Under the pieces are notes generated by a model. It did no database searches, was not told where the DNA came from, and saw only the letters and a list, made by a program, of their open reading frames with translations. A stretch of DNA of 64,000 nt from Trichosphaerium sp. ATCC 40318 (Eukaryota; Protista; Tubulinea), in NCBI GenBank assembly GCA_038496445.1, contig JALMLS010000062.1, positions 248,001 to 312,000 of the forward strand. The letters run 5' to 3'. Position 1 is the first letter of the stretch; each line of letters starts with the position of its first letter. This document shows positions 1,428 through 46,100 of this stretch, one piece after another. The translations under genes were made by a program, and so were the position numbers.

Positions 1428-2918
1428 TTGAATATGATATAAACGGCGTAGCGTGCAGCCACCGAAAACGCGTTGCTTTGTGTAACTTTTTTTGCAATGT
1501 CAAGATTGTTCACAACATGAGAATTTTGAATGACTTTTTTTGTTTTTACATTGGTCACGTGTTTGTTCATTCGAGGTTATCGAATAAAGGAGTTCCAAGC
1601 TTTCTCAATCTCCATCTTTCATATAAAGTATGCTTTGCGCTTTCTCTTGAGCATACCATTTTGTGATAGGTGTTCAAGTATGGATACTTTTCAATGGTAA
1701 ATCCATGGGAAACTAAAAAGCATAAAAGAGGGTGGAATGCGCAACACTGCACTTGTTCATGTATTCATTTACACGAAAAGCTCAGTGAAAACAAGTATTA
1801 TATAATAGCCTGAAAACTCATGTCTTTGAAGAGGCGTCATCCGTTGCAGTAGTAGAAATCTTGTTGATTGTGTAGTATAATTTGGGTGTTTACTAGCAAC
1901 GGACATCTGTTTGATAAATGCAAAATGACTTGATGTTGTACCTAGTATTCAAGTTTACTAATATTTTCTAGAAAGTGAGTTTCTAGCACTGTTAGCAGAT
2001 CTAGCAAGAATTGACACTTCTGTCAAATGGTGTAGATCTATCACTATGTGAACTATTGGCTTGCCAGTAATACAAATGCTGTCTATCATAGTACGACTTA
2101 CGTCCCTTACATGATAACACATTGTTAATGTCAGTTTCAAGATGATCGCAGTATTTTACGTAGACACTGCACACAAAACCACATCGTCCTCATTGAGCTA
2201 ATAGCGAATTTCAAGGTTATATGGTCTACAAAGCTTGAGCATTCCGCCTAACACAGACGAATGCCTCAAACACTGTTTGCCAATTGTTTTGCTTCAAAAA
2301 TCAACGCACGTGTATATAACTTACAACCGCTACGCTAGCGCCTACTCCACGTAACCAAAAGCTCTCTCGCAGCATTCAAACAACAAAGCAGGTATATTGA
2401 CAAAACAACCTCTCACAACGCTACCAACGTTGCTGTGGGCTTTGTAAACGCTGCCAGGGTCAAATAAGTTAATAAAAATTTTTTGGGTTTGGAAAATCAC
2501 GTGAGTTTAACAGGTTGGATTCGCAAAAAATTTTCCGCTTGACTATGTGAGGGCACACATTTTAAAAAAATGAGATTTGCAAGTTCTGTCAAAAGTCAAA
2601 TCCGATCTGACTGATCAGGCACAAACTGGATTTTTTTTGAAAGTCAGTCGTCTCAAAACTTGAATGAAACAGATAATACCTCAGAATAATGTAAGATAAT
2701 GACATAACAAACACGGCTCACATTTAAAGATGTGAGCTTTACAATCCTGCTAGAAGTATCAAACGTCAGGTAGTCGTGGAATGTTTTTGCTAACAGTTTG
2801 TCCGGCGAAAATTTGAACAACAATCAACTACAAAACTCCGTTACGGATTCACAAGCATCCTCCCGAGATTTTTATAATTCAAAAGCGAAAGATAACGCAC
2901 AATACAACAGCTGAAGCA

Positions 2919-4504: not shown

Positions 4505-4545
4505 GACAACAACTTAAAATAACTACCAATAAAAAATTGCAATTT

Positions 4546-4609
4546 CAAGTGCTAACTCCAGCTGTACTGATTCTGTAATAATATGTATGGTATTGAGATC
4601 ACTTTTTTT
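4546..4609 (+). repeat. Degenerate copy of 8626-8692 (3' end of a GPI-anchored protein gene)
   Basis: caagtgctaactccagctgtactgattctgtaataatatgtatggtattga versus caagtgctagctccagctatactgattatgtaacaatactatgtatggtattga. Confidence 0.75.
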
Positions 4610-5566
4610 CCATGTCGCGTACTAACCACTTCGCTACACAATACGTAGTTAGAGTTAAAATACTGGGTGCAAAGTAACCTGAAACTTGGTGCATTAATGC
4701 AAAATTACTTCATGTCATACTTACATCAGAATAATGCAATCACGTGATGTAAGATATTCACGTAACAAACATACACAATGAAACACTATCTCAACACAAC
4801 ACCAACATCGCGTGTCAGGTTGCTCAGCTACTAAGTGATCATCAACAAGAAGCAATAAGCACATCGGAAGAATTATTGCCGATCCTCCAGATTTATAGTG
4901 GTCCACAATCCGTATAAACGCGTTAACAGTATGACAACCGCAACATATGTTGTTTTATTAACTGGCACGAATATCATCAATTACTATCAAAAAACTTGAA
5001 TGAAGCAGACAATATCCAGTAATACTTGTAAGCGACAACAATAAAAGAATAATAAAACAATCGCTAGTATGTTTGTCATGTTTCGTGTGTATTAGAACGA
5101 ATTTTTATTTCTTTGATATTCCCGTGTTTGTACAAACGAGAAGCTGTCAAATTTGTCAAATCAAGCTGTGCCAATGGATCCATACGATTGTCTCCGCAAA
5201 CTTACTTGCGCTGGATAATAGTTCGTATTTTTCCGCATTCTACTGTCAAATCACGTGGAAAGTACTTTTATTTAACTGAATCCGCGTATGTTAACATCAC
5301 GCGTCCTCTTGTATTCTTTAAAGTGTATGCCTTTCAGTTATCCTTGATATCCTAGAAGCTAGCAGTGGTACTTGCTTCTCGATAAAACCAACAGCTCACG
5401 TGATCAGCTCAAATCTTTGCAACAGGATAAGGCTCTAAGTGTTTAAAATAAAAGAAGGCAGGTATTGGCAAATTGAGTACTTTCAGTAAAGACAACATAA
5501 GGTTCTATATAGTTAACGAATACAAGCTAGTCAAGGCTATTTTAACTAAAAAGGCGAATTTATTTC

Positions 5567-6691
5567 TTATTCGTTAACACTTGCCCATGCCTGACTACTG
5601 CCAATGCAAATTAATCTGCTGCGCCCGTATCCAACCGCTTCGATTTGCGTATAGTGGTCATCTGAACCAATATGCCAACTACCAATCAACCCATCGCCAG
5701 CATTACCAGTTACATAAGTCCACTGATTGTTCACAAGCTTCATCATTTGCGAATAACCATTATGATTAATGGCCACAACGGCATCAGTGTTAGAAAATGA
5801 AGACACGTCAAAGTCTCCACCTAGAAAAGTATCACTATCATGAATGACCCACACACCAATAAGACCTCCATCTCCTCCTTCCGTATAAACAAACTGTTTT
5901 GTAGTTCCATCAAATTTCATTGTATGATGCCATCCGTTCGAGTTTATAGCTAAGAGATCCTCTGTAGGAGCATCATAGAAGCTTCCTACAACATAATGGT
6001 CATTTGGATTGATCACCCACCAGTATATTCGTCCTGACGTTGTACTTGATAGAATATCCCAGCTGTTTGTATTTCTGTTGTAGTTCATCACTTTATACCC
6101 AGTGGATTTGATATGAACGACATATGTTTGAGGACCAGGGTTGATTACTTCGAAAAAACCCGAAATAATCTGATCTGAAGAAGAAATGTCTCCGTTTGTT
6201 GCGTATTGGATTTGTGTCCACGTGAAGCCATCAAAACCGAATTAAGCGAAATATTCAATACTGAGAGTTGCGTATCTACCGTCTGGGTTGACTACGAACA
6301 AAGATTTTCGTACTGAGTTGTCGAAGTATCCAGAGACATACTTGTCGTTCCACTTTGTTGGCCAAGACCCGATTCTAGCTCTCCCGCTTTCCGCGACACG
6401 CCACTCCTTTGTAGTATCATCTATGTACGCTAACATCCACATTTTACCCGGCTTTATAAACAAAGTAAAAGCACCGTGGGTGGTAGTGAACAAGTACTCC
6501 AGCGGAATGAATTTATCTCCATCTGCAACATTCCATGTTATAGTTGTATAAGGTCCACTTGCGACAAAATACCTATTTTGGTATCTCTTTGCCACGATCT
6601 GGTTTCCAGAGGCATGTGTTTGCCAGTAAGCGTAGATACTTGAAGTGGCACACAACAGAAGTAGAAGCAGTATACAGACGTGTTGTTTCAT
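5567..6691 (-). CDS. Secreted FG-GAP/VCBS-like beta-propeller repeat protein, interrupted by one in-frame TAA
   Basis: Signal peptide MKQHVCILLLLLLCATSSIYA; repeats IGxWxIxxxDxY/FxxGxF(D). ORFs 6242-6736 and 5567-6091 are in the same frame, separated only by TAA at 6244-6242. Confidence 0.65.
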
Positions 6692-7792
6692 TGTCTTGAG
6701 GTTTTTTGGTTTGCGTTTTGCTGTTTTTGAAAACATGTGATTTTTGGTTTCATTTTTTTAGGTCACAAACACACATTACGTCTCGGGAGAAATTTCTTTG
6801 AAAAATAACCGTCAATTACCTTTAGGAACCTTGCAGGAGTTTAGCCTCAAGAACTTGTATCTGTCAAGGTAACTGGGGAAGTGGGAAATATTTTACAAGC
6901 TTGTATTTTTGCGAAAGGGGTTTGGTTTGCGTTCCACATTGAGTTGGGTACTGGGTCTTTGGATCCGAAAAGGAACTCGGTTTTGATAAGATACTTGTTT
7001 GTGGTTGTATTTTTAAGGACATTCCATGTTGTGGTAGAAAGTTTAGCTAAAAAATTAGTTAACAGATTCAAAGAAAACAGAACGAAGTGTAAAGTTAGGA
7101 TTGATAAATCCCGCAACTTTTGTGAATTGTACCCGGTAAAATAAACACCCTTTTGTTTCGTGGCAATCCATATTCCGTCAAAGTGATGAGTGGATCTGTA
7201 ATCAATATTTGATTTGAATTCAGAAGATGTTTTTTAACAGTCAACTTTGATGTTTTCACCTAGTGACTCACTTGTAACATGTTTTGTAATCTGTCGATTG
7301 GTCCTCTTGTACTCCTACAGTTCTGTTTGTTCAGTACCTACTTTTTCCCCTTCACCATCGTATATAGCCCTGAACAGTTGTGTCGCTGTATAAAACAGGA
7401 TTTTCATGTATGACAACAAAGTTGAACAATAGAATTTAGACTCCTTTGTTACTGGAAGAACAAGCACTGGTGGAAAGCATGCGATAAGAAAAAAGTCTTT
7501 TGTAAGGGTCTACATCACTCTGACAACGAATGTGTTTTGACATGGGTTAAAGACACGACAAACAGGCACAAAAAACCTTGAACTGCAAGTAGTTAATGGC
7601 TAGTGAGGTTGCTATTTGGATATCTATCTTGTTTAGAGCTATAGCACCATCAATTTTGATTTGAATTGTAGTCATATTGTTACTTTTGCCACAAGTAAGT
7701 AAAATAACCAACCCTCTAAGCAGTGTATTGCCGTTACAAAGTCTCTTTATCATCGTCTTTACGTTACAAAAAAAGTACCAGCAATAACTGCT

Positions 7793-8714
7793 ATGTCGCT
7801 TCATCGTAGTACCTTGCGTTTTGATTGCATTAGCCACAGCCTATGCTTGGAAAATCAAGTGTTGTTATTCTTTTACTAGTGCCTGGAATGCGGAGGTTAA
7901 TTAATAAGTTAATGTTGGAAAGACGTTTATTCCAAGACGGTGAATGGGCCCTGAAAGACATGAAAGTGAGGAACTGTAGGATCTAAGCCCAACTAAGACA
8001 AACGTGAGATAACTTATATTACAACCTACAAACAACGGCCAAGCTGGTATAGGTATTGTACGTTTATTTTGAGACTTTTTACAATACAATTCTGTTTTTG
8101 TAGAAGATTATTCTTGCAAGCACGACAGAAACTCGTGATGTGTGGTGCTTTGGAGCCTTGGCTTCTTGAAATAAGTTTTCAGTACTCATTGTAACGCTTC
8201 TAATGTGTATAGATTCTACTGTAGAGCCTATTGTGGCTCACTTATACTCAAACTTATTCTTTTTTTATGCGTCTGTCGATTACTAAACGGGAGATATCAC
8301 ACAGGAGGCAATCCAACGCTCCTTAGCTACAATAATAGTATATCTTTGACAGCTACTGGAACTGAGATGAATTTATGGCTACACTTCATATTGGACCTAT
8401 TTATGACGGAAAAAGTTTTAGATTCTCACTGAAATCTGATACCCTATCACCTATTGAACATCTTACCAATACTCCTGTTATCACACTACTTCTCAAAGTA
8501 TGCGGACTTTATTTGCTGTTTCTAAACAGTATTGCTACAACTTCTGGACCAGTTGATCCATCAGTCCCCACTAGCAGTCCTGTTGTGTTCTGTACCTGCT
8601 TCACCAATGCAGCCTGTTCGGGAACCAAGTGCTAGCTCCAGCTATACTGATTATGTAACAATACTATGTATGGTATTGACAGTATCATTTTTGTTACACA
8701 TAACGTACTTGTAA
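7793..8714 (+). pseudogene. Decayed secreted/GPI-anchored surface protein gene
   Basis: A signal-peptide-like FIVVPCVLIALATAYA lies one base out of frame with ATG 7793. Further frame breaks near 8363 and 8585; P/S/T stalk and hydrophobic C-terminal tail TILCMVLTVSFLLHITYL*. Confidence 0.5.
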
Positions 8715-9073
8715 AGATCTTGTTTTCCAACCAAGCTAAAGATAACGGACATCAATAAATTCTACTAAATCTCTTCATCCTAAACAATTCTGGTTTCATA
8801 TGCATCTACTTACTCGCAAGACCAACGTTTGGTATGATAACAAGAACTGTAGATTAAATTACTTGTTAAGAACGGTATTTATTTGTTTTTACAGTTATGC
8901 TACAATAGTTTTTAGGTTTTGGTGTATTGTACAATTGGTTTTTTTTTTGTTTTAGAATTTGGCTGCTCTCTACAATCCCACGTGATAATGCATTATTAAG
9001 GGGGTTAAAAAAAAAGGGTGTGTTAATTATCATCACGTGACTAACAGCTTCAACTTGATAGAAGACTTTAACT

Positions 9074-12000
9074 TCAAGATTTTGCAATATCTCTCAATGA
9101 ATCCTCAGATGAAGACCTAAATAAAGAAGATAAGAAAAACAAATCAACCGATTTACAGATCTCAAAAAACAGGCACTTTGAGTCCTTCTCTCCATGCCCA
9201 ACTAACATAATTTACACTAATACCACTATTCTATAGTATGTAGAGTGTGGAGATGAGTTTACTTTGGTTAAGCTGAGCATGAACAAAGTGTTTTTGTGGA
9301 AGAAAAAAAAAGCTCTTGATGTTGTTTCGAACCTTGTGTGAACATCAATAAGACGTAGCTTCCTCTTCCGCACTTTGGGTGTGGGTGTCTTGAGCTCACG
9401 CTCACTAAGACTTTTTAAAGCGCCAAGATTGAAGTAGTTAAAGTCTGGGAATGACGAAGCGCGAGGTCTAGGTTTAGGTGTCTTCGGGCTGTTTTCAACA
9501 GAAGAGCTTTCATTTGATAGCTTTACAAAGTCCGGAGAGTTTCCAGAGAAAGAAGATGTCATAGAACCATATAATGACTTACGATCTATATCACAAATTA
9601 ACCAAATAAAAAAATACGTGACAACAGTAGAAAGCGTAAAAATACAAAAAGTAAAAATAGGTCAGAAAGCATACCCCAAAAGTAAGACGTGTCTTGTTTG
9701 CCTTCTGGTCTAGGTACAAAAATGGTATCCATAGGCATAGTATACAGTTTGGTCCAGTCAATATTCTTGAACCAAGGGTGACTCTTGATATCCTCCATAC
9801 CTTTCAAGGAGTTAACAAAAATTGTTTTGAAAAAAGCATAACAAAAAAATATTTGTTGCGTACCATTAGATCCTAGTCTCTTGGCTGGATCGATAGTTAA
9901 AAGTTTCTCAACAAAGTCCTTCGCTTCTTCTGAGATATCGTCTCTTGACTCATCTTCTGGCCATTCAACATCTATTTAAAGTATTAAAGAAAAGTTAAAC
10001 CGAAAGGAGGAGCAAAAGATGTACCTCTTCCCAATATCCGTTTAAAGATATTTTTTGGAGAATCTGCGTTGAATGGAGGATAACCAACCAAGAACTCATA
10101 TGTGATAACTCCCAATGCCCATAAATCAACACTAGGACCATGGGGCATACCCATAATGATTTCTGGACTCAGATAATCAGGTGTACCCACAACTCTGTAA
10201 AAGACTAGTAAGCAAACAAGTCTACAAATAGTGTGCCAGTTTTACAAAGAGTTCGCTTCGCTTACCTGCTACCAACAAAACTAGATGATCTAGTTGTATC
10301 TGAGAATTGTGAATTGCTACCATGAAGTAACTAACCACTAAGTAAGCAAGAAAAGATTGATACGAACAAAAAATACAAAGTGATTTTTTACAGTGCATAA
10401 AACGTACCTTCTGACTTCCCCTTTGGGTAGACAAGTCCTTTAAAGGTTCTTCTAATGATGGCATAGATCCTACATTAACATAGACATAAGTTTTTCTTCA
10501 TTATCCATAACACTAATGCAGGAAATCCCAAAAATAGTACCTGTATTATCATTTGCAAAAGCGACTTTAGACAAACCGAAATCAGTTAATTTCAAATGAC
10601 CTTCGTCGCTGATTAAGATATTATCAGGCTTCTAAAAAAAGCAGGTTAGATATTAGTTTGTAGGTATAGAGATATAGAAAGAACATACCAAGTCACGATG
10701 AGTAATACCGGTCTTATGAAGGTAATCTAACGCCAAAATAATCTCAGCAGCATAAACACGTGCATGATCTTCATCAAAGTAATGTAATTCACGTAATAAA
10801 GCAGCACAATCACCACCTTTAAAAGCACATATTAGATAAACGCTACTGTGAAAATCGGTGACATTTCTAAGAAAACTTTTGTAGAAAGTTTGCTTTTTTG
10901 TTGAAAACACTTTCTGTCACAATTGCTTACACAGAAAGTGCATGAACGTCACAGCTTAGATGTTGTAAATTTTCATCACGTGCCTATTAGGTATTCCATA
11001 ACCAAATATAGGTTTTCTTCTGATTGGAATGCATAGACCAGTCGTACAATGAAAGGATGTTCTGCTTTAGCCATAGCATTTCTTTCAGCCAAAACATAAT
11101 TCTGCATGTTCTTTCTTTGTATGTCAGCCTTACGTAGAACTTTTATGGCGAATAAATCACCAGTTTTCTTTTTTAAAGCAAGGTATACGCAACTAAATAA
11201 GAAACAAGAAATTAGCGATCATATTGATTAAAAAAAACTTCCAGACTTTTAAGATCAAAAAAAAAGACAAAAAAACCCATCCATACCCAAATGCTCCTCT
11301 AGAAATCGGCTTTAGGATCTCAAAATCTTGTATCGTTATTGGTTTGGCCCTTGGACTTGGTATTTGATCATGCTTTAGTAACCATGTTAGAGCAAAGAAG
11401 AATGAAAAGTCGATTGTTGGACTTACCTTTTCAGCTTTCCCAAACAATGATAAGAACGAATTAAGAATAGAAGTAGGCTTCTTTGCTATGGTACAATATT
11501 AATTAAAAGCGTATATTATTAGTACTAACTTTTTGAACGATTAGCTTCTATATCAGTCGAGCGCATAAGACTAGCAAATTCCCTCAAGGAAGCCAACTTG
11601 TCTTCAATCTACAACAAGCAAAAAAAGTCAGATACAGAGTTTTGACAAAACCTACAAAGTCTGACTTACAGCTTTGTAGATGCGATGAGCATATGTTATA
11701 CAAACAACATCAAATGTCTTTGTTTTGAGCATGTATCCAAGTAGTTTATCCATCAACTACAAGAGTAAGAAACCAACCAAGTTTCGAAAAACAATCTTTT
11801 TAAAAAAAACGAACCTCAGCGCAGCTTTCCATCGATGATTGAGAGCCATCGAAACTAAGAGATGCAGCACTAATACCAAAATTAGTTAAACAGTACCAAG
11901 CGAAAAGGAAAAAACAATTACCGTGCTGCAAACCGCTCAAGCTTCTCGAAAGTAGCTACTCTGCTCTTGTACTGTGTGGGTGAAATTTCTTTCCTCATTT

Positions 12001-16387: not shown

Positions 16388-18383
16388 ATGTACACCCATT
16401 ATACAGTAGCTTGCGCATTATTGCTTTTTAGTCTAATATCAATATCAACATGCGAAATTGTGTTTCAAAGTTACAACAGAAGCATATCTGCACCTTCTCT
16501 TGAGTTTCAAGGTATTATTAGCTCACGTGACAAATATCAAGCCTTTTGAATTTTGACACGCTGCCAAACGTATGTCGTTCGTATAAACTTGGTTAGGTAA
16601 TACATATAAATTCATGGCGCTGTCGGGCAAGTTAGCTAGCAGGGGCGAAATGGTTGCAGGTTGCTGTTCTTTAATTTCGAAAAAAATCTAACCTTAGTAA
16701 GGTGATATTGTTTTCATTGAAGGCGCTGATCTAGGCCCTGTGAACGAAGTAGAAGAACGTATCATATCCGTTATTGAGGATGGAGCTAAAGGCATTATTG
16801 TAGTGCTATATGGTGATGGTTGCTTTATGTATTGGCTATCTCATAGTAAGTCAATAAGGTTGTTAGAGAAACTTACTACTTTGCAGCAAATACAGAAAAG
16901 TTTACGGTTCCTATAGTTGAAGTAGACAGCGATGTGATATCCTTAGAAAATCTACAGAGTATGGCTCAGTCGAACGTTACGCTGGAATTTGGTATAAATG
17001 CTTAACAATTGTTGTAATTCTAACGGTTCTTTTTTTTCAGAGAGAAACCAATGCAAAGAGTTTTTTGAATCTGTGGGGTATACAGTATCTCAAGCAATTC
17101 TTCTTACACTTGTTGTTATGGCAAGTATATTTTGCACATACAAGTAAGATATCACGAGATGTTTGATGGCTATTTTTTCGCTACCAGAACACGTGTTTGC
17201 ATTGACATATTTTTTCTTTTAGACTATGCAGGTTGGTTTGTGGGAAGTTTAAAACAAGAGCGATAACAGTACCTCGTTTATGTACATTTATCGAAATTAT
17301 TGCAAACGTAAGTACGTAGTTTGAAACACTACTTCCTCTATATACTTAACCATTGATTTTGTTAGCTCACATTGTCTTTGTAATCGATTTAAACTGTGGT
17401 AGAAATCTTATGCCGCATCATCTAGTGTATTGCTTCTATATTGGTACAAAGAAGGGATGGCTTTATTTTATGCTTATATTTGATAGTACCTATTCCATTA
17501 CATACTATAACTAACATGCTCATTGTGTTATATTGGCATGAAACTCTTCATAACAAAAAGATAAAGGTTACTTATTTTCTTGATACAATGAGGGTACGTT
17601 TCTTCAAATGGTTCATAAATAATTCTTATCATTCATAGATCCCATGTTATATTTTTTCTGGCATTGTGTTTTGTATAGCTGTCTTTACAGCGGTAGCATT
17701 TCTTACAAATCTGCCATCACGTGAGTACAAACTATTCTGATTATATTCACTTATAACATTGAAATAATTCGTAGTTATTATCGGTCTCCTCGCTTGGGCT
17801 GCTGTGATTGTAATTGACATTGTCATTCTCATTATGCAATCCATCGTTCTTTGTAAGGTACAACAGTTGCTTGAAAGGCTGTTGACAGAACGCCTTTTTG
17901 GCAAGCTGAAGCTAGACCTCCTCATTGGCGTTCTTTGCTAACGATGATGTTGGATAGATATACAAGAAGGTTAAACAATTCAAATCCTCAGATGCGAAGT
18001 ACTGGAAGGCTAGGGTACCAAATCAATCAAAGATAGAAAGTTGGTTAAATGCTTTTTTCATAGATACGAATACGGATTTTGATTAATACCTCATTGTTAT
18101 TTCTTGTTACTGTGTTTTCAATTTTACAAATCCCTGTGCAAATATGGAGTGGTGTTGCTATTCAAAACTGGACAATATACATAATGCTTGCATTGCACGT
18201 TGTCTTATCATGTGTCCAGGTATTTTTTGTTAACTTTGTCTTTTTTTGTCATGTTTGGATATTGTACTAACGTACGGTCTGTTAGGTTTATTTCTTCCAA
18301 CCCATTGTAAAAAAGAACAAAAATACGACATCCACAGGAGTAGCAGGACAAAATAACATTGGCATTAGAACACTAGTAGAATG
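16388..18383 (+). CDS. Signal peptide + PA-like ectodomain + about 7 TM segments (GPCR-like membrane protein)
   Basis: Spliced product has GDIVFIEG...VIEDGAKGIIVV...FTVPIVEV (protease-associated domain pattern), then seven hydrophobic helices including ...NMLIVLYWHE; TGA at 18381-18383. Confidence 0.65.
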
Positions 18384-26439: not shown

Positions 26440-27468
26440 ATGTTAAGGATTATCTCTCGCGTACACTTTTACACCCATTATACATAGTTGACACCTAAAT
26501 TTAAGACAAATCGCCAAATACGTTCAAAACATGCTTCAAAGCCTAGATACTACACGTTCTTATTACCAGAAAAGGACAGAGTCAAAGCAGTACTGATGGA
26601 CGCTAACGGAGTACGTAAAACTTCCAACAACAACAAAAATTACAAAAAATAAAAATAAAAAAATCCAAAGTTAAAACAACTTGTTGTAGGTATTGTATTA
26701 TCGACCTAAATCTAAAGTCGCAATTGTACAAGAGATGCTGGGCAAGAAACTACACTGGGTACTTATACAGACTTCTACACATTGCATCATCACCCAATTC
26801 AAAAAAGTAGTTATAACATTAGGGTACTGAGATTACCAAGACACGTAAGGAAGCGAATACAGGTGTAAAAACAAAGCAACAATATCTTGAACATCTTATT
26901 GATACAGTGGATAATACTGTTGATGATAAGAAAAGAAAGGCATGCCTTGAGGCAATGTTAAAAGCAGAAAGTCAAATAGTAATTCATAAAGATGTTGATG
27001 TAACTCTTAATGAATTAAAACGTTGTGGATATAAGATTGGCGTTATAACAGATACATTATCACACAAGGAAGAAAAGCTCAAATGGCTAAAAGATGCTGG
27101 ACTAAATGTATCTTTTGACTTATTCTTAACATCAACAGAAGCAGGTGTTAAGAAACCTGATGCCAGAATTTTTCAAAAAGCTTCATCATTACTTGATGTA
27201 AGCCCTGATGGTTGTCTTTTTATTAGCCATAAGGTATGTATCAAAGTATGTTCTTGTTGGTTAATGTATCGATAGCAATCAGAAATACATGGTGCAAAGA
27301 ATGCAGGATATTTGTATAGTATTGCTGTTAACAAGGTATGAAATTTTCTTTCTAAGTTGTTTATAATTATCTACATAGGATAGTGATACGTCACAGTATT
27401 GCCATGATCTTGGGGACAACATCAGCACACTACTATCAATACTTGGTATTCATTATCCTCAAAAATAA
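26440..27468 (+). CDS. HAD-superfamily hydrolase with probable mitochondrial presequence
   Basis: MLRIISR, a 27-nt intron at 26461-26487, then LTPKFKTNRQIR. Motif I VLMDANGVL, motif II IGVITD, motif III KKPDARIF. The 3' end is uncertain. Confidence 0.8.
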
Positions 27469-27828
27469 TATGTTGTCTCATTAGGTGTATTACATAAATG
27501 GTTTCACCTCAGCCTTATGATGAAAGTTAAGAAAGGTAGTCTTCAATGTTTTTACATTGAGTGCGGCAGGCAAAAACTTTATGAAAAGACGTTGTACTAT
27601 AGTGTCTTATTTGATAGAGACTTTTTTGTGATTATTATTTGACAAATAGACCAACTTTTTGATAGACCTGGTTCTCCTAGAAGACGGTGTCAAGTGCCTG
27701 GAGAACCCCCTTTTTTTTTAGGCGACACAGTGTATTATCTTGGGTTGTATTGAATTCATCTCTTGTTCTACAATCCAACTCAGTATCAAAACTTCTAAAT
27801 GTAAACAAAGTGACGGTGCCAAACTGCA

Positions 27829-28101
27829 AAGACCAACGACAATATACTTGCTTGCGGTTACAATGAAGGAAAAAGGCTAGGTTGTTACAGGTGGATGATG
27901 ACCCGTTACTATTGTATTGACAATAAGACTACAAACACGCTGAAAGGTTTGAGCCTTCTTACTAGCAACAGTCCAGGGACCAACCTGAAGGGTTGCTGTT
28001 AATCCTAGTGGAGATTATGGGGTGCGGGGTGGCGTTGTATCAGTAACACATAGCTATGCAAGCTTATTGCCATGCCATGTCAATCCGAAACCGGTCTTTT
28101 T
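27829..28101 (+). ncRNA. Candidate structured ncRNA A (about 270 nt), family unassigned
   Basis: Ends pair (AAGACC 27829-34 with GGTCTT 28093-98) and run into T5. Internal helices AAGGCT/AGCCTT, TATTGT/ACAATA, ACTAG/CTAGT, CAACC/GGTTG, GCTTGCG/TGCAAGC. GC-richer than the flanks, no ORF. Confidence 0.5.
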
Positions 28102-28209
28102 GAAAAATGTGGAGTTTTCGCCTTTTTCGAAAATAAGAACCAAAATTGTGTTTTAGTTACAGCAACAACCCTACAACCTGCTACGACATTGTAGACTCTT
28201 TTTCATCCT

Positions 28210-28250
28210 TCCCACAATATTTTTTAACATCAGTAATGACATGCATATAA
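28210..28250 (+). promoter_or_regulatory. Putative type-3 snRNA promoter: USE/DUSE-like TCCCACAA and TATAA
   Basis: TCCCACAA at 28210-17 (about -65) and TATAA at 28246-50 (about -29) relative to the paired 5' end at 28275. Matches the Dictyostelium DUSE consensus (WCCCAYAA) and its spacing. Confidence 0.6.
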
Positions 28251-28274
28251 GCACAATGTTTACCTTTTATAATC

Positions 28275-28637
28275 GAGGTGCATAGTTGTCGTGCTTCCCA
28301 ACTGCCTGACCGCCATTGATATACTTCGTTTTAATGTATGGGAGCTAGGGTGTTTTAATACTTCGTAAATCTACTTCGCAATCTAAAACCCTAGTTCCTT
28401 AAACCAATCTACAGTGGCTCATTGCTAAGGTGTGGCGCTGCGACTTGTCTCGTTTCCCGCAGAAAGCGGGAGAACGAGGCGGGTTGTGGCGACCGTGACT
28501 AAGGCGTGAAAGGTCGGTGGTTAATACTTCGACAAAACAACAGTTGTTCTCTTTGAAAAAAACTAGTGCTATAAGGTATCGACAGAAGAGTCGTATACCC
28601 TGCACATCCGAGGCACACTACGCGACCACCTCTTTTT
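28275..28637 (+). ncRNA. Candidate Pol III structured ncRNA B (about 360 nt), family unassigned
   Basis: GAGGTG 28275-80 pairs with CACCTC 28627-32, followed by T5. A 25-bp hairpin at 28436-28491 has six G-U pairs and no mismatch (one bulged G), fixing the + strand. Further hairpins at 28341-28398 and 28574-28599. Confidence 0.75.
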
Positions 28638-28831
28638 GTTTTTTTCCTTAGGTGCTTACTACCAGTTGTTTAATAACCTCTCGCTATAGCAGAAATACTC
28701 AAACCACACTACGTCAATTACGGAAAGGATAGTGAACGGAATAATTAATACAGAAATGACCAAACAAGTGCGGTTTATTAAAAAATCTATTGTTGAAAAC
28801 CTAGCTTAATCTCATCTCGTTAGGTCTTATT

Positions 28832-29969
28832 TTACGACAAGGCAGCGTATGTAACTTGTGCTGGACATGTTGTGCCTAGATAGCAATCGATAATCTAAAA
28901 AACAGTAATCAGCTAAACACTGTACAAATTGTTTATAATGCCATACCTCAAGCTGTTTGTTAACACAAACACTCATTTGGTATAACCCACTATCTTGACA
29001 CATGGCAAGCGGTTCACCTCCGAGAGCAGACTTTATAGCGCTTGATATAGCATCTACGCTGTATGTTTTGGAGTTTGAAGGTGTGATGCCTGCGGAAGAC
29101 AAAATACTCTAAAAAGTGGCTTAAAATAAAAACACCCTTTTTATCTAAGAATGGTACCAGTAAATCGATTTTTTCGCGAAGTTTTAGTGCTGCTGAGAAG
29201 AATTTGTATTCGCTACCAAGAGCTGGTGCTTGTGATGCGCAAGTGCCATGCTTCTCCCATTCGTGACTCCAAAAGGAAGTGGAGTCAGTAGAGTAATAGC
29301 TAGGCCTAAACAAAGACTGAGTCAAAAAAAAGCTGAAAGAAAAGAAAAACAAGTTTGTAACGGTAAATTGTGAGCGGTGTTCACCGTACCAATATTTATT
29401 CATCTGAGGAAGTAATGACGATACGTCAGAGACGTTGAACTTATCTTGTGTACAGTAAGAAGGCCTAAATAAAGAAATAAGATCGTAAAAAATAATAACG
29501 CTATAAACAACACGCAACGCTTCGTAAAACGTGCGTTGTGTCGATTTGCAGACAAGGAGACTATCGAAATTCATTCAAATATAGCACCGTACCAGTGTCC
29601 TGTACTCAAATCAGGCCATAGACCTTAAAACACGTGTTAGAATAAAGTTTGGTTCCGAATATTCCGGAAGTTTAGTATTCTTGGTTATTACCATGTATAG
29701 ACCAAAAAGATGGGTTCCTAGGCGCGTTTTAGAGCGTATAATAGACTTTAAGACTCGTACTGGTCGCAAGATCCCGCACTACTACATACTTGACCCGGCC
29801 ATTGTTGTACTAGCTCCAAGTAATCCCTAGTGGGTTGCTTAGCAAGAACAAACGACTTTTTTCAGTTTTTGTCACACCATTGGTCTGATGAAACTCGTTG
29901 AGGGTGTATAGACAAAGAAGTAGATACATAAATGCCAAGGAGAAAAATAGAAAGAAGCTTCATTGTCAT
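28832..29969 (-). CDS. Secreted ribonuclease T2
   Basis: Signal peptide; LVQQWPG; CAS-I WSIHGLWP; [17 protein letters not shown]. Confidence 0.93.
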
Positions 29970-33875: not shown

Positions 33876-36658
33876 ATGGCAACGAATAATTCAAAAAAAA
33901 TACCTAGTGTAAGTGTGAAAGCTGTATTTGTTGATTGACGCCCTACAAAGGTAGATACGGAAGCGCTGACGCTTCAGTCGCTACCAGCAGATGTAATAAA
34001 TCTAGTATTCGATATAATGGATGTAGCAGGCTTTGTACGCTGTCGTGAGCTATCTGTGGCATTTAGAACTGGTATTGACACTCACCCATTCGTTAACGTG
34101 CGTTTTTGATTCCCAGAAGACCATGTACACCACAAACAGTCTGAATATTGCTAAAGGAGTTTCTACCATTGTGGGATCTTATTTGGAAGTTCACAGATCC
34201 TGAGAAACCGATTGGAGACGCAGATACTGTAGGCGCCAAAGTTGTGCCTTATATCACTCGCAACATAAAGAACTCAAACCATCACTATGCAGAAGGTGCA
34301 GCATATTTATTCAACATTCTTATATTTGAGTCTTGCGAACAAGAGTTTGTTATGAAGCTCTATGATGTGGTAAGGAATCTCATTCTGTTTTCTTTCTTTT
34401 TTTTTCTTCGGTTTCTACGCTTACTTCTATTCAAAAACTAGGTCATGGAGGCAATCTTGGATGACTTGCTGTTAAGAGATCAACCAATGGTTAGAGAGTG
34501 TGCTTTGTGCGTTATTTTCAATACATTTGGATCTCGTACTCTAGATAAGGCAAGACAATACATTAAACGCTGTGTTGCACGTGTTGTAGCACTCCTACAT
34601 GATACGAACGATGCTGTAGCTATTCGCGCCTGGTACACAACGTATTAATTTAACACTCTTTCTAAACTACTGTAAGGGGTGCTTTGCAAGCATTAGCGCT
34701 TGCTATAGAAACTAGTACTGGGCCTGTACGCCATTTAAAACGTTTCGAGTATTTTTGATGTTGTTGTAGTTTAATAAGAGGCCTATGTACGCGTCTTTGC
34801 AAGAAATTATTGATGTGTTGACCAAGAATATAGTGGAGTGGAGATAGTACGTACTTGTTTTATTTTCATAACAGTGGAAGCATGTGACATTAGAAAAAAA
34901 ATGTGAAAAGTTACCAATAGGAAGAAAAAATACTTACATTTTTGGCTGGTTACTATTTCCTGTTTATTACTTACTTAATCCTAGTACCCTATTAGATACT
35001 GCTGGGAATTCAGTAGGAAGTCTATTGCATATCTTTCCTGTATCACATGGAGCTGTTACTTCTTTGCTGAATGCTGTTATTGATACAATAAAATCCAGGC
35101 TTGGGAAACCTTTTGTACGCGTTTTTGTCCTTATTCTGAACGGGAGCCAAAACACATTTATTTAATCTAGGCCCATAAATCAGAAAAAAATGGAATTATT
35201 GGTATGTTTGGTGTCCTTAACACATTAGTTAACGGAGGTTTTGGTACGAACACATTTTCTTTTTTTTTTTGATTGGAATTAAAAAGTTTGAAGTTCTTGA
35301 ACTTGTAGCTTTGTTTAACCTGTTTTATTATTAAGTGCATGATCCAAACAAAGTCATGGATGTTGTTGATCATGTAATAAAACAAGGATTCTTGGATGAT
35401 ACAATGTTAGAAGAGAGTCTAATGATTATAGGTGGATTAGCTACAGGTATTCTTATTTCTTTCTTAGTTTTGATACAAACAACCTTTCGCTGTCATTCTA
35501 ATCACATCATATTTTAGCTACAGGGGAAATGTTTTTACCTTTTAGAGATAGGTCTCATGTTTTCCTTCTACCACTTTTTGATAGCAAGATTCCATTGGTA
35601 CCTACAAAAAAAAACTCAAACAAAAATTATATTTTCCTATCTGTTCTGTTTTTCTGAGTTGTTTTTGTCCTCAGGTCCCTACTTTAGTAGCAGCTACATA
35701 TGGTGATATAGCTAGAGCTCTACGCGAAACCTTTGGTCCAATAGTACCGGACATAATAAAAGCAGCTTTACGTTGTTGTGAGGTAAAAAATCTACTAATA
35801 TTCTGTACTATAGGTAACAATGTTTTTTTGTAGACGTGCTCCGATAGCTCGCCATTTTTGGAGCTTATTGGTGACGTAATGATGGCTTCGAATGCGTTTA
35901 TGCCATTCACGGATCAAATCATTGATAGGATTGATGTTGCGTGGAAGGACGTTCAAACGCAGGACTTAAGCAAATTGGAGTATGATGACATGAAGCTACC
36001 TGTTGCCTTATGTTCACTATTAACGTCCACTTGTCATTCTACGGAAAGTACGGTCACCTCCTTCCATTTTATTTCTTTTATGAAAATACATACGAACCAA
36101 CCTCTGTGCTATCAGTGAGTTAAAGCAATCTATGATAAGTGTAGTCTTCAAAACATTTTTATTTTTTATTACTACTATTTTACACGTGAAAAATATGACA
36201 CAATGTGTTTATATCTTCAACCCTTGAATATTCCCTCGTGTTTGATTAACACTTTTACATTATAGTTGATGTGGTTAAAAAATTATCAGAGATGATTGTG
36301 AACTTTTGTTCAAAGATGATACCTGTTTTTGATAATGTAAATTCAGACGATATGGGTTCCTTTATTGGATTGCTGGGGTACCACTCTTTTGATTTTTTTG
36401 AATTGGTTCCGGTGTAGTGCATAGTGCATGTGCATGGGCTGTATCCACGAACTCATGGATTCACAAAATGCGGCTTGAGGTTTTTTTTTCAACTATATTT
36501 GAATTAACACAGTTAGGGATTTGGCCAGCCGTTGTAAACCGGGTCCTCCTCCAGTTGAACAAGAACTCATTACCCTAATAGAAAAGTATAACAATCATCC
36601 AAACCATGGTCGTACAGCCCTATGGGCTTTACAACAACTGTACGTATTCAAACGATAA
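33876..36658 (+). CDS. F-box-like N-terminus fused to importin-beta-like HEAT repeats
   Basis: LQSLPADVINLVFDIMD..FVRCRELSVAFR, then VVPYITRNIKNSNHHYAEGAA, DQPMVRECA, EESLMIIGGLA, VPTLVAATYGDIA, GLLGDLA...TALWALQQL. An extra last exon to about 36717 is possible. Confidence 0.7.
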
Positions 36659-39974: not shown

Positions 39975-41318
39975 ATGGCTGATAGTAACGGCGACGCAGT
40001 AAAACTCGATTCTCTACCTACTGAAGTACTTGCAATGATTTGCGACTACTTTAAAGACAAAGAGCGAGTTATTTCCGCTCAGCTATGCTCTAGAACGGCT
40101 TCAGTTATACACGATATTGTAGGATACATCAATATAACCATTAAAACCATCGAAGACGCCAAAAGAGTTAGTAAATTCCCAGGCGTTCTAAATCGTACCA
40201 TTATACGTGGAAAATGCGGTATTGTCCACCTTAAAGGTGCTAAGCACATTGAGTGGTTACAGGTTATCGATGATGCTGGTTTTAAAGCTATCGCTGGCGT
40301 ACGTTCCTTAACCTTGTACTCTACACCGATAGCATCACATGAAGGCTACCGCGCTCTCTCTGGACTCCATACTTTAGAAGTTCACAATTATTTGCCAAAT
40401 GACGGAATTTTAAAGTATCTCGCAGGCGTTCACACGGTTTGCTTACCAAACGTCAAAGCTACCAGCGATGAAGGTTTATCAGCAATAGCAGGAGTACACA
40501 CGATTGACATACGGGGAGCTAATGGCATAACGGATAAGGGCATAGCTAAACTAGCAGGAGTTCATTCTATATGCATTAACAGTTGTACTGGCGTTACAGA
40601 CAAAGGGATAAAAGCCCTTGCAGGCGTTCATACGATATCTCTTAGAAGTTGCCGCCAGGTAACTGATAGAGGCATTGAATGCTTAAAAGGAGTACATACG
40701 ATTGATCTAGGCACGTCACCTAACATCTCAAGTGAAGGTATTAAGGCGTTGGCTGGTGTACACACGTTAATACTATCTGAATGTCCTGGCATTGATGAAG
40801 GTGTAAGAGCTTTAAAGGGTGTACATACACTTAACCTCAGTTGTTGTCGTATTACAGATTATGCTCTTGAAACACTTTCTGGAGTACATACTTTGAATCT
40901 AAGTGCATCTCTTGTTACTGATGTTGGTTTAAAGCATATTGCAGGTGTTCATTCATTAAATCTGGCCGAAGCACATCATATCTCAGATGAAGGTCTTAAA
41001 CACCTCTCTGGTATACATACTATTGATTTAAGCTGGTGTACTCAGATAACAGATGATGGTTTCTCTCATTTATCAGGTTCTCACAGTGTTACTCTTGTTG
41101 AGACGAATATTGGAGATAGAGGTCTTAAAGCACTTGCAGGTGTTAAGTTTATTGAGCTTATTGAGTGTGAGCATATTACTGATGAAGGAGTAAAGTGTTT
41201 AGTTGGTGTTGAGTATATTAATATTACTGATGCTGAGAATGTGTCATCTAATATAAGGGATGTACTTGTTGGTTCTAATGTTGTAACAAACTTTGGGTTT
41301 GCATTAAGTAGACACTGA
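39975..41318 (+). CDS. Intronless F-box + LRR protein (GVHTLxLSxCxxITD repeats)
   Basis: 447-aa single ORF; LDSLPTEVLAMICDYF followed by about 14 repeats of roughly 22 aa. Confidence 0.9.
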   Translation: MADSNGDAVKLDSLPTEVLAMICDYFKDKERVISAQLCSRTASVIHDIVGYINITIKTIEDAKRVSKFPGVLNRTIIRGKCGIVHLKGAKHIEWLQVIDDAGFKAIAGVRSLTLYSTPIASHEGYRALSGLHTLEVHNYLPNDGILKYLAGVHTVCLPNVKATSDEGLSAIAGVHTIDIRGANGITDKGIAKLAGVHSICINSCTGVTDKGIKALAGVHTISLRSCRQVTDRGIECLKGVHTIDLGTSPNISSEGIKALAGVHTLILSECPGIDEGVRALKGVHTLNLSCCRITDYALETLSGVHTLNLSASLVTDVGLKHIAGVHSLNLAEAHHISDEGLKHLSGIHTIDLSWCTQITDDGFSHLSGSHSVTLVETNIGDRGLKALAGVKFIELIECEHITDEGVKCLVGVEYINITDAENVSSNIRDVLVGSNVVTNFGFALSRH

Positions 41319-41568: not shown

Positions 41569-42543
41569 TTATTCTTCACCTGAAACAATTACAACAACCT
41601 TCCCCTTTGCGTGACCGTCTCCTAAATAATTAAAAGCATCTGATACCTCATCGAATCCAAATGTTTTATCGACAATAGTACTGATACTTCCTGCTTCAAT
41701 AGCAGACAGAATCTCGTCCATTCCTTTGTTTTCTTCGGCGGCCAATACACCCATCTTTTGGTTAGACACTGCGGATGTCCATGAACCGTAACCCAAAGTC
41801 TTGAATATATTACTCACTTGGCCACCTACCATACAATAGCTCCCTTTGGGAGTCAAACATTTACGGTATCCAGTAAGGTCATGTGCTGCAACAAAGTCAA
41901 CGATCAAATCGTACTTTTTTCCGCTTTTCGTAAAATCTTCATTTTTATAATCAATCACGTGATCAGCACCAATACCTCTCATGAATTCAAATTTGCTTGA
42001 ACTATCAACACCAGTAATATTAGCACCAAAATACTTTGCAAACTGTATAGCAAAAGACCCTGAGCCTCCACCAGCTCCGTTTATAAGAATTCTTTGACCA
42101 GGTGTTATATCGCCATTATACTTCAATGCTTGAAGCGCAACACATGCTGCTTGTGGGATTGCTGCGGCTTCTACGAATGACATGCCTTTAGGTTTAAGTG
42201 TAAGGCACTTTTCTGGTATTGCAGCATACTCAGCAAGACCTCCATGAACAGCCATCGCATCGCCAAAAACTTCGTCGTTTTTTTTAAATTTCGTAACGTT
42301 TTTTCCTACTGCTTCAACTGTTCCGGCAATATCTGACCCCAGAATGGTTCTGCTTGGTTTTGTTAGTCCCCATATACGCACATAAACTGGGTGACCCCTC
42401 AGGAACTCAATATCGGATGAATTAAGCGATACAGCGTGTACTTTTACTAAAACTTCATCTTTCTTGGGTATTGGTTTAGGAACCTGTACGTGGTGTAATA
42501 CATCGTCTGGAGAACCGTAAGAAGTATATTTAACAGCTTTCAT
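41569..42543 (-). CDS. Intronless NAD(P)-dependent MDR-family oxidoreductase (quinone reductase/RTN4IP1-like)
   Basis: 324-aa ORF; VHAVSLN, ILGSDIAGTVEAVG, LINGAGGGSGSFAIQ, GADHVIDY, GHAKGKVV. Confidence 0.93.
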   Translation of the reverse strand: MKAVKYTSYGSPDDVLHHVQVPKPIPKKDEVLVKVHAVSLNSSDIEFLRGHPVYVRIWGLTKPSRTILGSDIAGTVEAVGKNVTKFKKNDEVFGDAMAVHGGLAEYAAIPEKCLTLKPKGMSFVEAAAIPQAACVALQALKYNGDITPGQRILINGAGGGSGSFAIQFAKYFGANITGVDSSSKFEFMRGIGADHVIDYKNEDFTKSGKKYDLIVDFVAAHDLTGYRKCLTPKGSYCMVGGQVSNIFKTLGYGSWTSAVSNQKMGVLAAEENKGMDEILSAIEAGSISTIVDKTFGFDEVSDAFNYLGDGHAKGKVVVIVSGEE

Positions 42544-43118: not shown

Positions 43119-46100
43119 CTATGACGATCCACGGTGAAGAGTGTGAATATTCCAGAGCTGTGGGTTGTTTGTCATTGCTCTTGGTCTGCATCCGTTACAG
43201 CAAGCTGTCTTTCTCATACAATAGCATCTGTAACCAAATCCACCGCTGTAAGACAACCAGCTGAGTTGTTGAGTGTAGATAATATCAGAACACTGTGAGT
43301 CTTTTGCAGCGGCAGCAGCACAATCGTTAGCGAAGTGACGGTTATGCCAAGGGTCAACACGCCCTCTGATGAATACTTCCTTCTTACAATCTCTCCATGT
43401 TTCTCCAGGACAATCGTGATGTCTTGGTTTATCTCTTCCAAGGTATTGGTAACCGAAGTGACCGTCACAGAACATGCCGGCTTCCTTCAAGATAAGTGCA
43501 GGTGGATCGAAGGCAGGTGTATCAGATTTTGGTTCCAAGTCGCAGTTTCTGCAGTCGTTCGTCATAGGCCATTTAGGTTGACGTGTAACGTTTTTGTTAA
43601 GGTTAACAGCGTCACAAGATATGCACTCGTCTCCGTGTCTCCATGGGATATCTTGATGTTGTGGAGGGATAACGAATCCAGGGAATAGACGTCCAGATCC
43701 CTTAAACCAACATGTCGAGTGGTAAGCAGGGTCTCCTGCGTGTGTTACTTCTTCTGGGCCGAATGTCTCTGTAGCTCTTCTTGCGCGGACAGTGAAGCAC
43801 ATGTCTACGTTTGCCCATGGTTCTCCAAGATTTATTACGTTGTCTTTGCATATTTGAGGGATAAGGTTGGCTTGGCCGTTGTATCTGTTTGCCTCAAGTA
43901 CTCTAGGTAGGACCATGTATCCTTGGCATGAACCTCTTCTCTCACAAGCTCTTTGACATACGTCAGCATCGTTGTAGATTCTATGACAGTCTAAAAAGAA
44001 CGATTAGAATAAGAACAACAACGTAAGATAAACAAAACACGGCAAAAAAACGAGACCAATAAAAAAAACTAAAAAGAAACACGTGTTTTTTGTTCAAACA
44101 GTTTTCTTGTGTAACCAAAAAACGAAACAGAAAAAAAATCAAAGTATCCACATACCAAATACATCTTGTGGGTCAGGGAAGAAGCAATGATCAATACGAC
44201 TAGATAATAAAGTCAGAACTCGAACGAAAACTGAAAAAAAAAAAAGAGAAAACAAAAAAAAAGCAAGAGAACTTACGTGAATCCACCAGCTGGGTTTGGA
44301 AGACCGTAGATATCTGCTACTTGTCTGTTGACGTAGTTAACATCAAGACAATCTCTGTAACCTCTCCATAGCCATTGAATAACGTAGTCACCAAATGCAG
44401 CACCATTTGGTATTGAAAGTCTTACCATATCAGCATCTTGTGGTCTGTGTGCGTGATGCTCGAACTTGAAGATACCAAGGACGAAGTCAAGCTTGTTGTT
44501 GGTGTATTCGCAGTAATTTCTGACTTCAAGATCGTTCTTGTATCCGAATAATGTAGCGTCATCTGCCCATAGACCGAAAGCTTCTGGTCGTGGAATAAAG
44601 TTTGGAGAAGTTTCAGCGATTGGACCGCTGTAGTATTGCAAGAAAGCATTAAAGCCGGCATCGCGAGCTCTGAATTGTCTGTGGTATACAGGTAGATTCT
44701 GGCAAGCGCTGTTTGGTGCTTCGCTCAAATATGTTTCCATAAGGTCGAAAGATACCTCTCTAAGTCTTGCTTCATCTTCAGCCTTGACAATGACGTAGTA
44801 TGATGGTTGGGTGTGACCAACAGACCATTCGATTTCAAATTGTTGATTTGGACCAACTTGAACGTGAGGAGAAGCTTGTCTTCTTGATGGACATGGAGTT
44901 TGGGTACTAGCAATATCTGCGCTTCTGCCAATTCCGAATTGCCAGTTATGGGCTTGAGTGGTTGGGAAGGAAACCAAAGCGATGAGGAAGAGAGCCAAGA
45001 CGACTGAAGTTGTCATCTTTCCAGAAGAACGCATCGTCAAACCGAGGACAGCGAGAGCCATGAACAAGAAAGATGTTGTCGATTTTGTGGCAGGTGAAGT
45101 TGCGCCTCTTGCAGCAATAACAGTTCTACCTGGGTTGGCAGGAGGAAGAGTATTTGCGAGACATTTGCACATACGAAGTCTGAAAAAAAAAAGTAAGTTC
45201 AAGAAACTTGAGTAAGAAAAAAAAAAACAAAAAGTAGTTTTGACTTTGAGTGTTGACATACCCGATTCTTGTGTCACCGCTTCTGGAGTCACAAGTAACA
45301 CGTCCAGTATTACGTCCTTGGTCGGCACATCTTGTGTCGTCATAGTAGCAAAGACCATCAGTACCCATTGTAGCTCCTTTGTTGCTACAACCACTGACGT
45401 AAGGAAGTTTGCAAGGGAAACTTTGTGGAATAATAAGCTGTTCAATTCTTGTTGGGCTGTTAACGCGCTCCATATGGACAACATCACATTGGAGATTCTC
45501 TTCGGCACATCTATCAGTACAAGATTGACCTCTCTAAGAAGAAACATTAGTTTCAGACCAAAAATAAAGACAAAAAAAGAAGGCTTACCTTGGATTGAAA
45601 CCATGTTTGACGTGGTTTACGTGAACTTGACTCTCCGAGTTTGAGTGGACCTGCGCCACCATTTGGCCAATAAAAGGCGCCAGTATTGGCGTCACCTTGC
45701 TTAATTAAGCAATGAAACGTTACTGGACCTGTTCCCTTTGGAGGAGCCTTCCATTTCCATGTTGACTTGAGAGGCTTGAGTTCAGCGCTCTGGTGTGTAA
45801 TACTCTGGCGACACTCGTGTGTATTAGGCCAAGGTAATTGAAAGAATGCTAAACAAAAAGAAGTCAACACGTGAACGAAAAGTACAAAAAAAAAAAAACA
45901 CAAAGTCTGAAAATAAAGTGTTACAATTAACAGAATTGAATCACATTCATCAACCGGAAAAACTAAAAGAAGCGAAAAAAAAACCCAAATAAATGATCTT
46001 TTTCAACGTACGGTTTGCTTCATCAGGTAGAAGCCATTCACCAACTCTGTTACCAGCCTCATCTTGAGCGTATATGAGAATACCGCGGTATTTGAAGGCA

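Follow-up and report, generated by a model that had tools for sequence, protein, structure and literature searches.

The genome of Trichosphaerium sp. ATCC 40318 contains, in a stretch of 64,000 nucleotides (nt) of contig JALMLS010000062.1 (positions 248,001 to 312,000 of the forward strand; we call the whole stretch the window, and count positions from its first letter), what is almost certainly a real, expressed gene for a noncoding RNA (ncRNA). The gene lies on the plus strand between about positions 28275 and 28636, and is a member of a small, structurally constrained family whose expressed variants number at least three and include a near-reference form and two diverged forms (variants B and C) co-expressed in public runs. 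Its product carries four copies of the heptamer UACUUCG. We think it very probable that the family is an orphan and not a diverged universal RNA. The gene is expressed, its RNA is structured and constrained, and it has what looks like a small nuclear RNA (snRNA)-type promoter, in a little-studied amoebozoan lineage. As to its role, we tentatively propose, with somewhat less than even confidence, an orphan scaffold RNA of the RNA polymerase III (Pol III) type with several copies of a predicted protein site, for which an RRM of the 65K/RBM41 type would be the top ligand candidate. The parts of the locus, with lengths of helices in base pairs (bp), are as follows.

28210-28217, plus strand: upstream promoter element TCCCACAA, at -65 to -58 from G28275 (direct reading)
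28245-28250, plus strand: TATA-like box ATATAA at about -30, with its TATAA core at 28246-28250 (-29 to -25)
28275-28636, plus strand: inferred transcript of about 355-362 nt, covered by contigs from 28281/28283 to 28623-28629
28275-28297 and 28610-28632, plus strand: 5' and 3' strands of the terminal closing helix (predicted fold)
28300-28311, plus strand: core helix AACUGCC-U-GACC, pairing with GGUC-GGUGGUU at 28512-28522 (predicted fold)
28312-28318, plus strand: junction helix GCCAUUG, pairing with CAGUGGC at 28412-28418 and enclosing the 5' domain
28322-28328, plus strand: motif copy 1, (A)UACUUCG, in a 24-nt block unchanged in variants B and C
28340-28399, plus strand: hairpin with a 12-bp stem and an A/U-rich apical region (28352-28387), carrying motif copies 2 and 3
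28359-28365 and 28372-28378, plus strand: motif copies 2 and 3, in that apical region
28433-28495, plus strand: long G-U-rich hairpin of 3 + 18 + 7 bp with pentaloop AGAAA (28461-28465)
28506-28537, plus strand: 32-nt block GUGAAAGGUCGGUGGUUAAUACUUCGACAAAA, the same in variant B
28525-28531, plus strand: motif copy 4, within that block
28528-28605, plus strand: 3' domain with two smaller predicted hairpins and an A7 run, the most variable part
28633-28645, plus strand: candidate Pol III terminator T5-G-T7, its T5 (28633-28637) directly 3' of the terminal helix

Part of the stretch is present in 15 public sequencing runs (7 of them recorded as RNA) that come from five studies, and contigs of four runs, each from a different study (X6, X10, X4 and X9), were placed on positions 27400-29700. 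Within this interval, apart from a spliced contig of the neighboring RNase T2 gene in X4, contigs are confined to 28281-28629, which bears out the discrete transcript of about 28275-28635 that a preliminary description of this DNA had predicted. Three X6 contigs begin at 28283 and the X4 contigs begin at 28281-28283, and contig ends fall at 28623-28629, just short of the T-run; we place the start at about 28275 because the contigs begin at 28281-28283. Illumina adapter sequence adjoins the contig ends (CTTCCGATCT before 28283, and AGATCGGAAGAGCGTCGTGTAGG after 28626, 28628 and 28629), and the gaps that separate these ends from G28275 and from the T-run (8 nt on the 5' side, 4-10 nt on the 3' side) are as expected of end loss in a random-primed library. 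In X4, the contig of the minus-strand mRNA carries the read-1 adapter at its 28769 end, and the RNA contig carries the reverse complement of that adapter at its 28628 end, an arrangement that fits a first read antisense to the RNA and hence an RNA on the plus strand (the contigs alone demonstrate neither strand nor ends). Word depth in X4 is about 2,500-10,600 for contigs of the RNA, as compared with 37 for the spliced neighboring mRNA; because word depth is a poor measure of expression, we use it only to call the RNA not rare. The plus strand has no plausible open reading frame (ORF), its only frames being GTG-started or TTG-started and no longer than 44 amino acids (aa), and for a 72-aa open frame on the minus strand neither a word-index search of transcript contigs nor exhaustive phmmer gave a match.

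All RNA contigs of the near-identical form (X6 and X4) have A and not T at 28544 and an extra A after 28596; a low-depth X9 contig, labelled 'DNA?', is the same as the window at both places and differs from it at 28592 (C>T). The differences at 28544 and 28596 probably distinguish strains, alleles or near-identical paralogues; editing or a modification would be a less likely source of them.

The control elements stand where they had been reported, direct reading finding TCCCACAA, TATAA, the paired termini GAGGTG/CACCTC and GTCGTG/CGCGAC, and the T5 run each in place. TCCCACAA fits the sequence [A/T]CCCA[C/T]AA, which from the Dictyostelium literature we take to be the consensus of the promoter element DUSE. 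In dictyostelid ncRNA genes DUSE lies about 60 nt upstream of the start, and genes of RNA polymerase II and of Pol III use it alike (PMC7919456); the authors of that work did not expect it to be conserved beyond dictyostelids (PMC7919456). At the present locus the octamer at 28210-28217 likewise lies about 60 nt before the start, and because TCCCACAA matches DUSE at the reported position, the element that the preliminary description had termed 'USE'-like looks like an amoebozoan snRNA-type promoter element. Since a promoter of this type (with TATA at -29) is here combined with an end at a T-run after the terminal helix, Pol III is the likely polymerase of the gene. The combination of CCCAYAA, 20-45 nt and TATAW occurs four times in the window (0.73 expected).

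The octamer WCCCAYAA itself was counted 18 times in the 64-kb window, as compared with 7.9 expected, a number that no shuffle reached; examples lie at 17238-17245 (minus strand), 34169-34176 (minus strand), 56308-56315 (plus strand) and 63086-63093 (minus strand), and the one at 63086 has TATAA 45 nt downstream and no obvious T-run. Some of these octamers may be markers of more small-RNA genes.

The plus strand of the locus folds at -135.2 kcal/mol (z = -6.6; none of 100 shuffles folded as well) and the opposite strand at -107.4 kcal/mol (z = -2.8), an asymmetry of the kind that G-U pairs on the plus strand would produce. The structured plus-strand ncRNA proposed earlier is upheld: it is expressed, it is non-coding and it is strongly structured. 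At the termini GAGGTG (28275-28280) pairs with CACCTC (28627-28632), and GTCGTG (28288-28293) can pair with CGCGAC (28621-28626); in the predicted architecture, the terminal and core helices would join a 5' three-way domain, the long G-U-rich hairpin and a variable 3' domain. The long hairpin had been described as 25 bp without mismatch. It is indeed long and has the six G-U pairs claimed for it, but over 28436-28491 it really consists of 18 bp, which include those six, and 7 bp with one more G-U pair, set on either side of the single bulged nucleotide A28473; three extra pairs extend the stem.

The expressed variants are what points to constraint on this fold. The contigs show the locus to be one of at least three expressed forms and not to stand alone. 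Variants B and C were rebuilt from contig difference tables. Variant B (X6 record 11, also found in X10 and X4) has 22 listed substitutions and 7 inserted or deleted nucleotides over 28283-28537 (255 nt), and a 3' domain of 69 nt in place of 58 nt; variant C (X6 record 12) can be aligned over 28283-28413 and 28604-28629, between which it has a center of 210 nt in place of 190 nt. Folded independently, the reference and variant B arrive at the same architecture. Compensatory changes convert U28346-A28393 to A-U in a variant, and C28313-G28417 to U-A in variant B and also in variant C; six further variant changes preserve pairing (G-C to G-U, or G-U to A-U). In the junction helix, the pair U28316.G28414 becomes U-A in the variants; in the long hairpin, five changes (G-C to G-U, or G-U to A-U) leave the pairing in place and the loop becomes AGAGU. 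Three stretches are unchanged in variant B, namely 28283-28309 (the first 27 nt covered), 28314-28337 (the 24-nt block with motif copy 1, which is the same in variant C as well) and 28506-28537. In the core helix, variant B has both strands as in the reference; in variant C, the 5' strand differs at 28310/28311 and the 3' strand falls outside the alignable part.

Several diverged transcribed copies could also be the mark of an expressed but functionless repeat, either a retroposon resembling a short interspersed nuclear element (SINE) or a fragment of a mobile element. We consider this very unlikely: blastn and nhmmer searches of the RNA against the 64-kb window found no second copy, the promoter is of the external snRNA type and not an internal A/B box, and the locus has no poly(A) or simple-repeat tail and no target-site duplications. 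The variants, moreover, show a selective pattern foreign to a SINE or transposon fragment, in that they retain the fold, through compensatory or pair-preserving changes, and all copies of the motif.

The covarying pair U28346-A28393 bears on another possible identity, that of a Pol III-type telomerase RNA like those of plants and ciliates, with CUAAAACCCUAG (28383-28394) as its template. The promoter type, the paired termini and the size resemble those of plant telomerase RNAs, and the 7 nt AACCCUA are the CCCUAA repeat in permuted form (chance alone would give about 0.1 matches of that length per 363 nt). However, CUAAAACCCUAG is contained in the stem of the hairpin at 28340-28399, as the 3' arm of the 12-bp helix 28340-28351/28388-28399; A28393 is replaced by U in a variant of comparable contig depth in which its partner U28346 has become A, which is how a helix behaves; and the expressed variants, at least three in number, reach very high contig depth. 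We reject the telomerase reading, to which we attach next to no credence, because CUAAAACCCUAG is a helix arm that varies, with compensation, between variants.

We turn to the heptamer. TACTTCG is present in 14 copies on the two strands of the 64-kb window, where 6.7 are expected, and four of these fall within 363 nt on the plus strand; at the background rate the Poisson probability of such a cluster is about 2.5e-8, and in shuffles of the RNA any 7-mer at all reaches four copies in 0.08% of cases. Variant B has no change at any of the 28 motif positions, and variant C keeps all three of the copies that are visible in it; in the variants, the spacers that flank copies 2 and 3 carry substitutions, a 3-nt insertion and deletions. 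Constraint on the repeated motif, which would account for copies intact in diverged expressed variants, is therefore supported by these comparisons. The four copies lie at 28322, 28359, 28372 and 28525, as the preliminary description had it, and mostly in regions predicted to be unpaired; three of them had been placed in predicted hairpin loops, but neat, stable loops of that kind do not appear in the predicted fold, where copies 1, 3 and 4 have at best weak U.G-closed mini-stems, and copies 2 and 3 sit within an A/U-rich apical region of 36 nt. Whether the motif is a multivalent ligand site we regard as an evenly balanced question.

In the same part of the RNA, AAUCUA occurs three times within 28368-28410 (at 28368, 28380 and 28405), two of these as AAUCUAC and one fused to motif copy 3. 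These repeats may be a degenerate extra motif copy or the trace of an internal duplication.

A literature search for UACUUCG returned only small interfering RNA sequences. The heptamer is not an anonymous motif: it equals the loop of human U6atac that 65K and RBM41 bind (PMC4980772, PMC11039992). The C-terminal RRM of 65K binds CUACUU in the loop of stem-loop III (SLIII) of human U12 and the C-G-closed CUACUUC of U6atac, with U, A and C being critical (PMC4980772). The loop of human U12 SLIII reads CUACUUU, and the distal 3' stem-loop (SL) of human U6atac reads C96-CUACUUC-G104 (PMC4980772); UACUUCG is thus identical to U98-G104 of U6atac, and nearly identical to the U12 loop. RBM41, a paralogue of 65K, binds the same U12 and U6atac loops, with affinities of 1-4 uM for single hairpins, and both proteins have been traced to the last eukaryotic common ancestor (PMC11039992). 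Among the four copies, copy 3 (CUACUUCG, one occurrence) matches eight bases of the U6atac loop, and the U, A and C that are critical for binding of 65K are present in all four, so that the loop sequence, at least, is of the kind that the protein recognizes.

From these observations a working model can be drawn. The gene would be transcribed from its snRNA-type promoter (DUSE-like TCCCACAA plus TATA) and would end at the T-run, and the closed multi-domain frame would leave the four [A/C]UACUUCG copies for the most part unpaired. The RNA would then scaffold a ribonucleoprotein (RNP) that holds several copies of one sequence-specific protein, the likeliest ligand being an RRM of the U1A / U2B'' / U11/U12-65K / RBM41 type. 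If this is the ligand, then the RNA would serve to store, to titrate or to assemble a protein of the minor spliceosome, and four low-affinity sites on one RNA would bind a protein of the 65K/RBM41 type with avidity. We put forward a 65K/RBM41-type ligand as a lead and not as a result, and think it rather improbable in itself. A still more specific form, a 7SK-like reservoir or assembly platform of the minor spliceosome that would carry up to four 65K or RBM41 orthologues on loops mimicking those of U12 and U6atac, and would buffer or deliver the 65K/RBM41 factor, seems to us less probable again.

A number of observations count against the scaffold model or against parts of it. The transcript contains internal T4 runs at 28329-32 and 28353-56, which are mildly awkward for Pol III. 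65K and RBM41 recognize a heptaloop presented by a short, stable, C-G-closed helix, and no motif copy here stands as a 7-nt loop on a hairpin of that kind. Predicted pairs are broken in variant B at 28424-25/28504-05, 28430/28499 and 28340/28399, and so the structural model is doubtful around 28424-28430/28499-28505; the covariation as a whole rests on two variants rebuilt from tables in which a few differences are unlisted. The match to U6atac was made post hoc, after many known motifs had been considered, and 7-mers shared by RNAs of 363 nt and 125 nt are what chance would give; this one carries weight solely in that it links the repeated motif here with the functional loop there. The loops used for comparison are human, and may not be those of the host's own U12 and U6atac, and neither direct reading nor Rfam finds any other U12 or U6atac element in the RNA. 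Finally, when metagenome contigs were scanned for triplets of the motif spaced as in this RNA, no relative outside this organism came up (the output was four loci with tandem repeats and a single three-copy match that is probably due to chance).

The contexts of the motif leave room for a different mode of action, in which the heptamer works by base pairing and the four single-stranded UACUUCG copies anneal to CGAAGU(A/G) in another RNA. The target would be a segment of pre-rRNA or rRNA, a small RNA or a set of mRNAs, and the RNA itself a chaperone, guide or sponge. Motifs that are predicted to be mostly unpaired and are the same across variants agree with this, as does a high contig depth such as many guide and chaperone RNAs show, and U1A-type RRMs prefer tight hairpin loops, which the motif contexts are not. 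Seven nucleotides, however, confer little specificity; no box C/D, H/ACA or Sm signals were seen; no target can be named, and the window has no rRNA or snRNA gene; and four identical short sites are a better match to a repeated protein site than to a guide. We accordingly hold base pairing to be possible but doubtful.

With respect to known families, the RNA locus gave no match in an Rfam search of the whole window at gathering thresholds, and searches of 28150-28700, 28310-28400 and 28490-28640 at E <= 10 gave only microRNA and bacterial small RNA noise at 11.6-17.3 bits. The earlier statement that hallmarks of known families are absent therefore holds for the whole locus and for its sub-regions. 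Direct reading finds no GUAAGGA (the branch-site-binding sequence) or Sm site of U12, and no AAGGAGAGA, AGC triad or internal stem-loop of U6atac, for which there was also no Rfam match at E <= 10; for RNase P/MRP there was no Rfam match, and no P4-type pairing can be drawn between CR-I-like and CR-V-like elements; and SRP RNA, U3, 7SK and U6 gave neither a covariance-model match nor hallmark boxes. UAAGG repeats and a branch-site look-alike, UUCCUUAAAC, were set aside as not kept in variant B.

A member of some universal or widespread family (RNase MRP/P, SRP, U3, a U6atac-like or U12-like snRNA, or a 7SK-like RNA) that had diverged beyond the reach of Rfam would share the size, the expression and the promoter type of the present RNA. 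Several local likenesses could also be cited for such a member, each of which we take to be at chance level and without support from a model: GUGAAAGGUCGG resembles CR-I of RNase P/MRP and nt 87-96 of human U12 (GUAAAGGUCG), and CAACUGCC...GCCAUUGAU and GCGUGAA resemble box C and box B of human U3. In the same class are the likeness of ACAGAAGAG to the ACAGAGA box of U6, an AUAUAC such as follows the 5' hairpin of U6, and a likeness to the lower helix of U12 SLIII. Shared 8-mers are expected by chance at these lengths; the CR-I-like GUGAAAGGUCGG pairs instead with 28300-28311, and there is no complementary CR-V strand; noise apart, no Rfam family appears at E <= 10; and no P4, GUAAGGA, AAGGAGAGA/AGC, Sm site, U3 box A, SRP helix 8 or GAUC repeats were seen. 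We consider such a hidden relationship quite unlikely, and prefer to regard the RNA as an orphan.

The surroundings of the gene include the following features.

1353-1427, minus strand: tRNA-Asn (GTT) gene, the only Rfam/ARAGORN match in the window
28769-29600, minus strand: gene of the RNase T2 family (Pfam PF00445, E = 1.3e-18)
39975-41318, plus strand: uninterrupted ORF for an LRR_6 protein of 447 aa, its best relatives being marine protist transcripts (40% identity)
41569-42543, minus strand: intronless ORF of 324 aa for a zinc-type alcohol dehydrogenase / quinone reductase
44273-45604, minus strand: uninterrupted ORF of 443 aa, with no Pfam match

The spliced RNase T2 transcript in X4 has four GT..AG introns of 52, 49, 84 and about 128 nt, with donors GTAYGG or GTACCA. 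The best relatives of the 324-aa dehydrogenase are 52-59% identical and are all bacterial or metagenomic, and its ORF is a candidate for lateral transfer into the amoeba genome. Over the window, G+C is about 37-38%, and introns are of 49-84 nt (one possibly of 128 nt) with GT..AG ends. The Trichosphaerium draft genome is reported to have 37.69% G+C, introns that average 75 bp and a high level of lateral gene transfer (PMC10521059), which the G+C, the intron size and the bacterial-like gene of the window fit. A second candidate RNA of the preliminary description, at 27829-28101 on the plus strand, has fared less well: the four runs have no contigs there, no CCCAYAA lies upstream and it folds no better than shuffled sequence (z = 0.10). 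It has no similarity to the RNA studied here.

The present RNA may be set beside several known systems. With the telomerase RNAs of plants and ciliates (Pol III, upstream element plus TATA) it shares the promoter layout, the paired termini, the size and a telomere-like heptamer, and it differs from them in that its template candidate is base-paired and variable, and in having several highly expressed variants. In comparison with 7SK and other Pol III scaffold or decoy RNAs, it is alike in its size (about 330 nt in those RNAs), abundance, upstream-promoter gene and closed multi-domain fold, and in having repeated short motifs that are candidate sites for several copies of one protein. 7SK itself, which to our knowledge is known only from animals, is not homologous to it in sequence or structure (no Rfam 7SK match). 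Another system with repeated sites of this kind is the U1A autoregulatory element, which carries two U1 loop heptamers. U12 SLIII and the 3' SL of U6atac have one loop per snRNA, on a stable 5-bp stem with a C-G closing pair, whereas the present RNA has four copies on 355 nt, without such a stem. If the motif is a 65K/RBM41 site, then this would be the first RNA outside the snRNAs to engage a protein specific to the minor spliceosome, and it would make it possible to study how minor-spliceosome capacity is set in cells.

The closest parallels in gene organization are with the dictyostelids. Their Class I RNAs measure 42-65 nt and have a short stem and an 11-nt motif; the present RNA, at about 355 nt, is unrelated to them in sequence. 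As a group, the dictyostelid DUSE genes for ncRNAs (snRNAs, SRP RNA and Class I RNAs) are like the gene described here in the octamer, in its position at about 60 nt and in the 3' T-run, and also in their high expression and several gene copies (PMC7919456). Unlike the hosts of those genes, the host of the present RNA is not a dictyostelid, and the locus therefore suggests that a DUSE-type element and its spacing are conserved outside the Dictyostelia.

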